Shown here in pieces: positions 133 to 23,713 of a stretch of DNA of 23,998 nucleotides (position 1 is the stretch's first letter; every line of letters starts with the position of its first letter). A program made the position numbers and the translations under genes. The stretch is from Bugula neritina. Its lineage: Eukaryota > Animalia > Bryozoa. The notes under the pieces were generated by a model. The model saw only the letters and a list, made by a program, of their open reading frames with translations, was not told the DNA's origin and ran no database searches. Location of the stretch: positions 1-23,998 of the forward strand of contig CAXIUT010000116.1 in NCBI GenBank assembly GCA_964035545.1, in the 5' to 3' direction.

Positions 133-1617
133 ATGGGCGCTAACTAACAAAAATCAACTTTAGCTAACTATGACCTTAAATGTCCACAAGATAGCTGCAC
201 TCTTCTATCAAAAAAAGGTCAAAAAGAAGAACAATACATGATGAAAACATATCGAACTAGCAATATTGATGAGCATAATTAGAAATTGAAATATTTTAGA
301 GAATATAAATAATAGATGAAGAACAGTCAAGAATTACTCGCCTTACTGGATGTTATATAATAAAAATAATAAACTTTTTGCTCTGCATCCTACAAAATCA
401 ATCTCATCTACTAGTACTCTTAAGTCAATATTACTTCATAAATCAAAGAAAGAAGAATCAAAAACATATTTTCTGAAAGAAAAGATCACCAAAGAACTCA
501 ATTTTAATATTTTGGATACGATGATATCTGCAACATAATGTATAGCTGCTTAAGTGCCCTATGGCTAGTCAAAGAAATGGATACGACCGATAGATAACTA
601 AAAAGATATGGAACTATATTTCTATCAACTGACGATATCATTTTGATGTAAGATGGCTCCATCAAGGTAGTCGATCCTTATCTAACTAATTATTCCAAAA
701 GATATGTATATGATTCATCTTTTTGGTATAGTCCATAAAAAATAAAATAGTTTAGTAGAATGGACGATTAAATAGATGCTGTTTTTGAGTTGGGAATGAT
801 CATGATATAAATCTGTTTGCTTTTGAATAAAAAATAATATTCTTGGAGTTAGATTTGTTCTTAAAAAGTCATCAAAGATTGGATTAAATAGTGTAGAAAT
901 GTTTATTCTGAAGATATTAGTCGAATAGGCATCAATATCTTTGACATTATTGAAAAGATGGTTGTGATAAATAGAGAAGAAAGAATCGGACTTGAATAAA
1001 CTATTAAATATGCTGAAGATATGTATTAACAAGGAGAAAATAAAGTCTAATAAGGCAGTCCTCTTAAAGAGGTTAATGTAGGATCAGAAATGAAAAAAGA
1101 ACTAAAAAGAACAAACCATAGTTCAAGTGGTAAAAAATATACTACTCATGTGAGGATGAGTGAATATTAAAAAGAGAATAGATAGTAAAAATGGAATAGA
1201 AAAGAATATTATTCTTCACCTAAAGTGAGTAATTTTACAATACAAGAAGAATAGAACTCAAATGACTAGCAATCTTAGATGTTATAAAGTTTAAATGTTC
1301 AAAATGCTGCTAAAATTAACGGATTTAACTCATCTTTGGGAACATGTGGAGTCTTCAACAGTATAAAACTCAATGATAGCTATGCTTATAACTGGAAATA
1401 TCACTCAGTTTGCGGCAGAGATGACGAGTAGCAAGTGTTCACTGATCCTCAACTGATGCGGACAATAAAAAGAGAGTTATAGGATATTTAAGAGAGAAAG
1501 AAAGAGAAATTGAAGAAAAGTTTACTCAAGAAGAGTCAGTTGATTGGAAGTCAACATGAATATGAGAGTTAGTTATCTGATTAGAAGATAACAAATAAGG
1601 TCTATTTGACTGAATGA
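133..1617 (+). CDS. Protein kinase-fold protein, probable pseudokinase (494 aa, intronless, TAR=Glu)
   Basis: ATG at 133 opens a frame with no TGA until 1615-1617. It starts MGANEQKS and has kinase-like elements: YMMK (subdomain II), FCSASYKINLIYEY (hinge), IILMEDGSIKVVDP (VII region), WYSPE (VIII), AVFELGMIMIE (IX), KMVVINREER (XI). HRD, DFG and the Gly-loop are absent. Confidence 0.8.
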
Positions 1618-1742
1618 TACTATTCTTATTATCAACATTAATACGATAACTTAGTTTATATGAAATCAAAAAATATTGAAGATATTTTATCATTCAAGAA
1701 TTAATATATTTACTATAATATTAGCTTAAATTTTAAAAATTA

Positions 1743-2067
1743 ATGATGATGATGATGATGATGATGATGATGATGATGATGATGATGATGATGATGATGA
1801 TGATGATGATGATGATGATGATGATGATGATGATGGTGATGATGATGATGATGATGATGATGATGATGATGATGATGATGATGATGATGATGATGATGAT
1901 GATGATGATGATGGTGATGATGATGATGATGATGATGATGATGATGATGATGATGATGATGATGATGATGATGATGATGATGATGGTGATGATGATGATG
2001 ATGATGATGATGATGATGATGATGATGATGATGATGATGATGATGATGATGATGATGATGGTGATGA
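1743..2067. repeat. (GAT)n trinucleotide microsatellite, ~108 units, with four GGT interruptions
   Basis: Seen directly. GGT variants start at 1835, 1913, 1985 and 2060. It lies between two convergent genes. Confidence 0.97.
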
Positions 2068-2068
2068 A

Positions 2069-21061: not shown

Positions 21062-21228
21062 TAGTTGATAACCTATTCAAATCAATTAAATATCATTCCT
21101 AATCAGTATCATATTTATTTTATTGATTTAAATAAAAATAATCATTCACTAACATCTTATTCTATCAAATAATAACAACAAAGAAAAGACTTAAATAGAA
21201 TATTAATATTGAAATAGAGGGATAACAA

Positions 21229-22688
21229 TCAACAGACAACTGGTTAAACTTATGTCCATACTACACTTTGACCGATTCCTATCATTGAATGTTAATTTGG
21301 ATTTTTTGGCTAGTTTTTATTTATGTTTCTTAAGTTACTGCACTTAATCTCCAATGTTTTTGACTATAATTTGATGTTAGTCTGACGCTAGCTCATAGTT
21401 CTAAAAGTCTTAATAGAACTGTCTACCCTTTGCTATGATCTAAATTCACTATCTTTTGATCGACCATTTGATTGAGGTATTGATACTTATATTATCTAAT
21501 GATATAAACCACTTTCTTCTTTCTTTATCTGCTATCTTTGAAAAGGTTTTTACTAGCTTTAACTCATCTACTTTTTATCATGCTTCTATTATTATTACTC
21601 TTTTTAATCATATTTTTTAGTTTTTTTATACATAGAAGGAACTTCAAAATTAGAACTTGCTTTACTTGCCTCATTTGCCTTCATGTTAGCCGCCTGGTTT
21701 GCCTGGTTTGCCTTACTTGTCTAGTTTTCCTCGTTTGCCTTACTTGCCTTGTTTTCCTCGTTTGCCTTACTTGTCTAGTTTTGAATATTTGCTTCAGGTA
21801 AGGGAGCTTACTAATTAAAATTTAGAACAGCACTCATTTTGTTATTTATTCCATTTATTTAGTTATATTTGCTCGAAGCAGGAGTATCTTTTGCAGAGAT
21901 TTAATGACTTTTCAATTGGTTTAGTAAGATACTTGTCCCTGAGTAAGAAAAATTTTGCTAACTTTTTAAGATTGATCTTTATTTTATGATAGGTTTATCT
22001 TTGTTTTTAGGAACATTATATGATTTTGGCCTTTAACCTTCTTCAACTATTAAAGGAAGAGCATTAATAGATTATGGATCTTTCAAAAGTGCTAAAAGAT
22101 GACTACTCGCTGAAAATCGTCCTTTATTTTGATAATAAATTTTTTATTATTTTTTTTATTCTTCTACAATAATTTAAGTTTTATCTTTTTTGATTTAATT
22201 AGAAGGAGGATTAATCATAATAGATTTAGTTGGAGTAAAGTTCAGTTATTTTTTTCCTTATTAATTATATTTTATTTTTTTGGAAGTCTTTTATTTTATT
22301 TAAAGAGGAAGAGTCGAATTGATCTGACTAGGCTCATTATTAATAATAGGTGTTTTTTAAATTGATATCTCTTCATCAGGTTTCAGACTTCTCAGATTAG
22401 TTTTAGGCTCAAGATGATTTCTACTGATTATTACATCATTTGGTATTTTAGGCAAAGATATTGATGCTTTACTCTCTCCACCTTATGGTTCTTTTTGAAT
22501 AGATTCTGATTATTAGAAAGTGTACCTTCAGGTTGAATTTTCTTATTTTAGGGAACATCTTGAGAATGGTTAACTGGTTTTCTCTAGGTAAGGTTGTTAG
22601 GATTATCTTTAGATTAGTTTTGATTAAAGCCTTGATTAAGATAAAGAGGATTGCGCCTTTAATCTGGTTTGTTGGCACACATACCCAT
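21229..22688 (-). CDS. Unknown low-complexity protein (479 aa), N-terminus MGMCANK, one intron
   Basis: 1460 nt minus a 20-nt intron = 480 codons with no internal TGA. Contains SKANEEN repeats and ends VVWTEVEPVVC. Confidence 0.75.
21705..21780 (-). repeat. Coding 27-bp tandem repeat, (T/A)SKANEEN(E/K), ~3 copies, decaying into ANQ repeats
   Basis: GTTTGCCTTACTTG..TAGTTTTCCTC units on the + strand with a period of 27 nt (9 aa). Confidence 0.8.
22506..22525 (-). other. 20-nt intron (phase 1)
   Basis: GTACACTTTCTAATAATCAG. Removal joins exon 1 to the long open frame of exon 2. Confidence 0.8.
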
Positions 22689-22901
22689 GAGTATAACAAT
22701 ATATGCTAAACTTAATTTATTTTGGGTTAAAATTTATATCCTAAATTTGTTGATATTAATTCGATGACTGCAACAACAGAAATTGATATAAAATATTAAC
22801 CATAGTTTAATAAAAATAAAGATATTGATGTATGTGAATTATATATTAATATTAGGAAAGAATTAAAATAAATAATTGATTTAAACCAGTATAAAGTTAT
22901 T

Positions 22902-23713
22902 TCAAGTACGTTTATTAAAGGTAGTCAGAGTTGAGTGTTCAGAATATTATCTATCTAATTTATCAGTTCTTTTAAGAATTTTACTCTTCTAAAATGAAAT
23001 ATTCTTATCTTTTTATTATTAACTATTCTTCATATTCTATCCTTCAAGACTCCCATTATTATTTACACCATATTTTACCTTATCATTCTAAGTATAGTTT
23101 TTACTGTATTATCTATCATTTATCATTGATATTCTGCTATTAAACTAATTTTGTTAGTTCTGATAGTTATCGATATTACTCACCAACTATTTTATTTGAG
23201 ATAGCTATTTTATATATCCTTCTTTATTTTGTTTATTTTATGGTCCTTTTATTTTATCCAACTCTTTTTAGTTTTACTATCTTTATTCATGATTAACTGA
23301 CTATTCTCCTTGATTTTATTTTTTTGATTAATTAATTTAATTTTATGCTGTTTTGTTGGTTTTGGACTTTATAAAATATTTTTGACCTCCTAAAGACTAC
23401 CTTGCTTTCTTCTTTGCCTAATATTCAATCATTTGTCTTTCATATTACTCATCAACATTAGTATTTCTACGACTTGGTTATAATGGTATGATATTTAGTG
23501 GAGTTTATGGTTCAAAAGATATTTTATTCAAACAAGAATTCACTTTATTTTATTGTATTTATTTCTTTTATGATACCTTTTTATTCATTGATGCTTTAGG
23601 AGGAGCTGAGTTTTGATAATAATACCTTCTAGAATGATTTGTTCGCTTTATTTAGTTCGATTATACTTTTATTTTTTGTATTAATTGATGGGGGAACCAG
23701 GACATGGACCCAT
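22902..23713 (-). CDS. Unknown E/K/N-rich protein (263 aa), N-terminus MGPCPGS, one intron
   Basis: 812 nt minus a 20-nt intron = 264 codons. The unspliced frame hits TGA just after the intron; the spliced frame runs to TGA at 22902. Confidence 0.72.
23606..23625 (-). other. 20-nt intron (phase 1)
   Basis: GTATTATTATCAAAACTCAG, required to avoid an immediate TGA. Confidence 0.8.

Follow-up and report, generated by a model that had tools for sequence, protein, structure and literature searches.

Both UAA and UAG encode glutamate on a 23,998-bp molecule with ciliate-type telomeres, as in translation table 30

In peritrich ciliates, the former stop codons UAA and UAG (collectively UAR, where R is A or G) have been reassigned to glutamic acid (PMC11687900). 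So far, a single origin of this change has been reported, in Peritrichia, where the preceding state was probably the ancestral oligohymenophorean one with UAR as glutamine (PMC10553269). Known hosts of the resulting code, translation table 30, are Vorticella/Opisthonecta (Sanchez-Silva 2003) together with Carchesium polypinum and Campanella umbellaria; one study, which also cites Sanchez-Silva 2003, predicted the peritrich code from transcriptomes of the latter two (PMC4967479). Several other ciliate codes likewise read UAR as sense. In table 6 (Tetrahymena, Paramecium, Oxytricha) both codons stand for glutamine and UGA is the sole stop; in Oligohymenophorea sp. PL0344 the two are split, UAA encoding lysine and UAG glutamate (PMC10553269); in Mesodinium (table 29) both encode tyrosine; and in Condylostoma and karyorelictids (tables 27/28) decoding depends on context. 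Here we analyse a stretch of 23,998 nucleotides, hereafter the window (contig CAXIUT010000116.1 of the Bugula neritina assembly GCA_964035545.1), for which a first-pass annotation had proposed that UAA and UAG both encode glutamate and that UGA is the only stop. We find that the genes of the window use TAA as well as TAG as sense codons, and that both encode glutamate. The code is translation table 30, already described for peritrichs, and the finding is therefore not new; UAA and UAG as glutamate, UGA as the sole stop and the standard meaning of all other testable codons are shared with its known hosts. Four lines of evidence agree on this assignment: residues in homologous protein columns, codon exchange between orthologues, amino acid composition and polymorphisms between strains. 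Most of this evidence comes from the first of the following three genes:

4745..18823, minus strand: axonemal dynein heavy chain, DNAH2-like inner-arm type; first ATG at 18823, TGA stop at 4745-4747
18916..20191, minus strand: 3-ketoacyl-CoA thiolase of 411 residues; three exons, 10 in-frame TAA, TGA stop at 18916-18918
3496..4572, minus strand: transaldolase; 12 TAA and 3 TAG in frame, TGA stop at 3496-3498

Read with the standard code, the entire window contains no open reading frame (ORF) longer than 159 codons; if TGA alone is taken as a stop, the longest ORF has 4,703. The latter is the open frame of the dynein gene (4745-18853, minus strand), which contains 159 TAA and 105 TAG codons, and its sole TGA is the terminal one. 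While the true frame has no internal TGA, its two off-frames over the same stretch contain 129 and 199. A frame of 4,703 codons that is full of TAA and TAG but has TGA only at its end implies that the former two are sense codons and that TGA is excluded from the frame.

The identity of the encoded amino acid was derived from distant dyneins. A search with a stop-free piece of 110 residues around the AAA1 P-loop gave 150 cluster representatives, from which 37 dyneins of at least 3,300 residues were kept and aligned, at 25-40% identity, to a query with X at each TAA or TAG. The homologues come from oomycete, heterolobosean, vertebrate and other sources (among them Aphanomyces, Percolomonas, a euglenid and fish DNAH2); the set is thus not dominated by ciliate proteins whose translation assumed table 6, and a bias from this cause is ruled out. 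In the 124 columns corresponding to TAA, the homologues have E in 28% of cases, D in 12%, K in 8% and Q in 7%; for the 75 TAG columns the respective values are 27, 11, 9 and 6%. These profiles resemble those of GAA (E 36%, D 12%) and GAG (E 32%), but neither those of CAA (Q 27%) and CAG (Q 21%) nor that of AAA (K 24%). A Codetta-style sum of log-odds over columns gave, for TAA, +105.1 for E, +15.3 for D, −35.0 for Q and −60.9 for K, and, for TAG, +59.7 for E, +1.5 for D, −26.8 for K and −27.7 for Q. With 2,000 column bootstraps per codon, E was the best residue in 2000/2000 for TAA and in 2000/2000 for TAG. As a control, 49 of the 50 sense codons having at least 10 columns were assigned their standard meaning; the exception was AGC (n=11), for which A and S could not be separated. 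Where one residue holds the majority of a column, it is E in 18 of 21 TAA columns and in all 11 TAG columns.

Because table 6 represents the commonest ciliate reassignment and is the inferred ancestral state of Oligohymenophorea (PMC10553269), glutamine is the first alternative to consider. The same log-odds oppose it for both codons, and Q is the majority residue in none of the 32 columns. Moreover, glutamine has codons of its own in this gene. The first-pass annotation had pointed out that conserved glutamine sites use CAA or CAG, and this holds: conserved columns show Q in 13 of 14 cases for CAA and in 4 of 4 for CAG, and both codons are themselves inferred as glutamine. The split code of PL0344 has the UAG assignment in common with the window, and both genomes are AT-rich and oligohymenophorean-like; yet it requires UAA to be lysine, the residue with the lowest of the log-odds quoted above for TAA. 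The table 29 code, in which both codons would be tyrosine, was considered as well and rejected: Y does not rank among the top six residues for TAA or for TAG.

Several individual codons had been put forward earlier as instances of conserved glutamate. All nine are located as described, eight on the minus strand (where they appear as TTA or CTA on the plus strand) and one, in a kinase-like gene, on the plus strand. Six of them, two in thiolase and four in dynein, fall on clearly conserved glutamate columns. In dynein, these are the TAA of GYAGRS*LPDNLK (12566-12568; E in 35 of 37 homologues), the TAG of IC*IML (12494-12496; 34 of 37), the TAA of MLSS*GF (12476-12478; 26 of 37) and the TAG of TIG*IPNLF (9662-9664; E in 24 and D in 6). 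The conservation claimed for a fifth dynein site, the TAA of FEV*DL (11615-11617), does not extend to distant dyneins (Q in 8, E in 8, G in 5, D in 5), although both close orthologues do have GAA at this position. The TAA of YSP* in the kinase-like gene (736-738) turned out to be uninformative, as the orthologue from a related species (L104, introduced below) also has TAA and the kinase family could not be confirmed.

Closely related species offer a more direct view of codon equivalence. A word search with the same 110-residue piece identified metagenome fragments 92-98% identical to it, and their contigs gave two related species. The first relative (L094, from wastewater metagenome SRR770574) has a dynein orthologue at 2468-16579 of exactly 4,703 codons and about 70% amino acid identity. 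The second (L096-L106, contigs of 29-41 kb) has one that is 83.5% identical (L096:4481-18583). Opposite the TAR codons of the window, 263 of 264 of which could be aligned, the first relative has GAR 137 times, TAR 69, GAY (Y being C or T) 21, CAR 7 and AAR 4 times. In the second relative, the partners of TAA are GAA (69), GAG (50), TAA (15), TAG (14), GAY (8), CAA (1) and AAA (1), and those of TAG are GAG (37), GAA (28), TAA (15), TAG (12) and GAY (9), with no CAR. Altogether, 119 of 159 TAA and 65 of 105 TAG codons correspond to GAR in this species, compared with a single CAR among 264 TAR and a single AAR among 159 TAA. Thus, the commonest change at TAR codons is a first-position transversion between T and G, while the transition between T and C that would lead to CAR is almost absent. 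Such a pattern is sensible only if TAR and GAR are synonymous, and we conclude that TAA and TAG are freely interchangeable with GAA and GAG over evolutionary time.

This exchange bears on each of the alternative codes. For glutamine, the corresponding counts are just 7 of 263 and 1 of 264 in the two relatives. With these data, we regard table 6 as having next to no chance of being the code of the window, which otherwise shares with its users the sense reading of UAR and the sole stop UGA, and with Tetrahymena the C4A2/G4T2 type of telomere. The split code is still less credible, to the point of being negligible: UAA and UAG are interchanged with each other between orthologues, as well as between strains (position 17135, see below), which makes them synonyms in the window, unlike in PL0344. 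Both codes had been declared excluded at the outset, and both are indeed excluded by wide margins. As for tyrosine, the partners listed for the TAR codons of the window do not include TAY in either relative; in the opposite direction, 1 of 149 TAR codons of the first relative aligns to TAY in the window.

Composition leads to the same answer. The combined share of GAR and TAR among all codons is nearly constant in the three dynein orthologues (9.44, 9.91 and 9.40%), with CAR at 4.0-4.1%. Distant dyneins contain 6.0-9.3% glutamate, mostly 7-9%, and 3.3-5.5% glutamine; if TAR were read as glutamine, the dynein of the window would have 9.6% glutamine and 3.8% glutamate. The distribution within the glutamate codons differs between species, TAR accounting for 59, 32 and 19% of them in the window, the first and the second relative at third-position GC contents (GC3) of 0.28, 0.35 and 0.55, respectively. 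As the three-species comparison illustrates, captured stop codons behave as entirely neutral alternatives to GAR, with a share that follows the AT content of the genome.

Thiolase provides independent columns. Against 110 eukaryotic homologues, two of its TAA codons, both cited earlier as conserved glutamate, are on columns that are practically invariant: GV*SMS (19781-19783; E in 110 of 110 eukaryotic and 70 of 74 bacterial sequences) and TS*NVA (19667-19669; E in 109 of 110 and 74 of 74). Four more TAA codons are on columns with an E majority. Six close relatives of 72-82% identity have E throughout at 8 of the 10 TAA sites, and the remaining two sites are occupied by D (4) and E (2), and by E (4), Q (1) and K (1). 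One position could be taken as support for table 6, as the TAA at residue 84 aligns with Q in bacterial thiolases. However, the six close relatives have E there and eukaryotic homologues have A, L or F, and hence there is no glutamine signal at this site. Comparison of strains, for which we used contigs of four public runs covering 17000-21000, where about 1% of positions differ, adds evidence on the shortest time scale. Of 34 differences within the coding sequences of dynein and thiolase, 33 are synonymous under table 30; among these single-nucleotide polymorphisms (SNPs) are changes from TAA to GAA at 18121 and from TAA to TAG at 17135.

The first-pass annotation had also stated that all eight genes end in TGA. 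As a count, this involves some circularity, TGA having served to define the ORFs in the first place; what does stand is that the TGA stops of dynein, thiolase and transaldolase are conserved at equal or nearly equal positions in related species. The C-terminus of the dynein in the window is within two to three residues of the ends of distant homologues. Its third-last codon is TAA (GAA in the second relative), followed by a conserved Ile/Leu and TGA. Consequently, UAR is read as sense even next to a stop, unlike in position-dependent codes. None of the three orthologues of about 4,700 codons has an in-frame TGA, as opposed to 79 TGG. These observations support UGA as the sole terminator in the genes of the window. 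They also separate the window from the context-dependent codes (tables 27/28), with which it shares the sense reading of UAR: it has no in-frame UGA, has sense TAA right beside a stop and uses a dedicated stop codon. Tables 27 and 28, in which UGA may also be tryptophan and stops are positional, were rejected for the same reasons.

A milder form of ambiguity could be imagined, in which UAR is mostly glutamate but sometimes glutamine or stop, or UGA is sometimes tryptophan. DNA comparisons are compatible with alternative decoding at a low level. Nevertheless, exchange between TAR and CAR does not exceed that between GAR and CAR (7/263 vs 2/180, Fisher p=0.32), so that the residual glutamine signal is not significant, and both the sense TAA two codons before the dynein stop and the complete absence of in-frame TGA speak against it. 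We consider ambiguous decoding very unlikely, if somewhat less so than either of the two alternative fixed codes.

If the unambiguous reading of UAR as glutamate is accepted, its machinery can be envisaged from other ciliate stop-codon reassignments (PMC10553269), from which we infer a combination of suppressor tRNA-Glu and UGA-restricted eRF1. UAA and UAG would be decoded by suppressor tRNAs derived from tRNA-Glu, carrying UUA and/or CUA anticodons and charged by glutamyl-tRNA synthetase (GluRS), and the N-terminal domain of eRF1 would be restricted to the recognition of UGA. Several points weigh against our interpretation, this part of it included. Neither in the window nor in ten related loci did a search reveal a tRNA gene, the window has no eRF1 gene, and no run on record as RNA carries the locus. 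The code assignment draws on three identifiable genes, with dynein dominating the statistics, and tests at the DNA level may leave room for a minor fraction of alternative decoding. The third gene, transaldolase (identified by a match of two pieces to Pfam TAL_FSA), has sites that are weakly informative. The metagenome scan for it found 13 loci, 12 of them long enough to align, resulting in a thin alignment. At its TAG in *DPGV (3880-3882), one of the codons cited earlier, metagenome homologues have E (5), I (3) and D (2), and a close relative has GAT for Asp; the codon is where it was said to be but says little about its meaning.

What kind of molecule carries these genes can be read from its ends:

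1..63, no strand: left telomere, (CCCCAA)n, 10.5 copies
23787..23998, no strand: right telomere region, (GGGGTT)n blocks at 23787-23863 and, terminally, at 23906-23998, with 42 nt between them

Telomere repeats of the form C4A2/G4T2 are of the Tetrahymena type. A start in (CCCCAA)n and an end in (GGGGTT)n indicate that the window is a complete linear molecule; it is 23,998 bp long, AT-rich (GC 0.30-0.35) and encodes about eight genes. It is almost certainly a full, telomere-to-telomere macronuclear mini-chromosome of an AT-rich ciliate whose nuclear genes use the table 30 code. The two arrays at the right end have the same orientation, and the 42 nt that separate them are unique and AT-rich. 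This double array could reflect alternative telomere-addition sites or an assembly artefact.

The code of the window is identical to that of the known table 30 hosts, and the organism itself is probably a peritrich. In a maximum-likelihood tree of thiolase, the window and its metagenome relatives form a well-supported clade (ultrafast bootstrap, UFBoot, 96-99) that adjoins Pseudocohnilembus, Paramecium and Tetrahymena/Ichthyophthirius and is apart from Nassophorea and from outgroups on the apicomplexan side. The lineage looks like an oligohymenophorean one from wastewater-type samples. The C4A2 telomeres, tiny introns, a relative from wastewater and the code itself all fit a peritrich. In the thiolase gene, two putative introns (19544-19563 and 19038-19057) lie between the exons at 19564-20191, 19058-19543 and 18916-19037 on the minus strand. 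Both are exactly 20 nt long, have the form GTAC...AG and split a codon after its first base; restoration of the frame, GT..AG ends and homology support them, and no spliced joints at these positions were present in the four public runs compared, none of the runs that carry the locus being labelled as RNA. The first intron holds two strain SNPs (19559 and 19560). Three peritrich genomes have narrow intron-length distributions, the lengths themselves not being stated in the text (PMC13685798). Wastewater is, judging by the title of PMC5191532, a habitat long associated with peritrichs. A point against the assignment to peritrichs is its circumstantial nature, phylogenetic placement being limited to thiolase, a single-gene tree without a named peritrich sequence.

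The same code might therefore be hosted by another oligohymenophorean or some other ciliate, in which UAR would have become glutamate independently. The metagenome thiolase clade is separate from all named ciliates in the tree, and Oligohymenophorea are already known to include a separate reassignment of UAG to glutamate, that of PL0344 (PMC10553269). On the other side, only the single origin in Peritrichia has been reported to date (PMC10553269), the relatives come from a wastewater metagenome, which is a habitat tied to peritrichs at least in the title of PMC5191532, and introns of 20 nt, like the two in thiolase, are in keeping with the narrow distributions of intron length in three peritrich genomes, lengths again not being given there (PMC13685798). 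On balance, we find a non-peritrich host unlikely. Slightly less likely still is the stronger proposition that a ciliate outside Peritrichia represents a second origin of UAR as glutamate or, in a weaker version, that we are dealing with a deeply divergent, unsampled peritrich having multi-gene mini-chromosomes of ~6-30 kb and former stops as the majority glutamate codons.

The consequences are mainly practical. Every gene of this genome has to be read with table 30. Public gene calls, both for the organism itself and for its relatives (L094, L096-L103), clearly take TAA and TAG for stops and split the dynein into dozens of fragments of ~30-300 residues; as a result of such calls, database entries of this lineage are systematically fragmented. 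A new question would arise only if the organism proved not to be a peritrich. Residual interest lies in that small chance, as well as in the complete multi-gene mini-chromosome, the 20-nt introns and the use of reassigned codons as the majority glutamate codons.

The remaining features of the window are the following:

133..1617, plus strand: kinase-like ORF; 39 in-frame TAA/TAG, ends in TGA, contains the cited TAA of YSP* at 736-738
1743..2067, no strand: (ATG)108 microsatellite between two convergent genes, the kinase-like and the oxygenase-like one
2069..3193, minus strand: open stretch of 375 codons bounded by TGA, within which lies an oxygenase-like ORF; 16 in-frame TAR, TGA at 2069-2071
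20279..21076, minus strand: low-complexity ORF; 15 in-frame TAR
21229..22527, minus strand: Lys/Asn-rich ORF; 43 in-frame TAR
22902..23717, minus strand: Lys/Asn-rich ORF; 33 in-frame TAR

The order thiolase, dynein heavy chain, transaldolase (3496-20191 in the window) is kept in the second relative. There, the kinase-like gene directly follows transaldolase and the oxygenase-like gene (2069-3193 in the window) is absent; it was not found in the syntenic locus L104. The kinase-like ORF is 40% identical to its L104 orthologue. Stop-free pieces of the former had no significant match to a Pfam family, and the longer pieces of the orthologue likewise had none in Pfam and PDB. An HxD...H motif in the 2069-3193 ORF suggests a putative 2OG-Fe(II) oxygenase, and its pieces had no Pfam match. 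In the low-complexity ORF, a 24-nt tandem repeat at 20431-20483 lacks one copy in three of the four public runs; since this copy-number polymorphism stays in frame, it argues that the ORF at 20279-21076 is coding. Finally, the space between the kinase-like gene and the oxygenase-like one is taken up by the near-perfect (ATG)108 array, immediately next to which lies the TGA stop (2069-2071) of the oxygenase-like gene.

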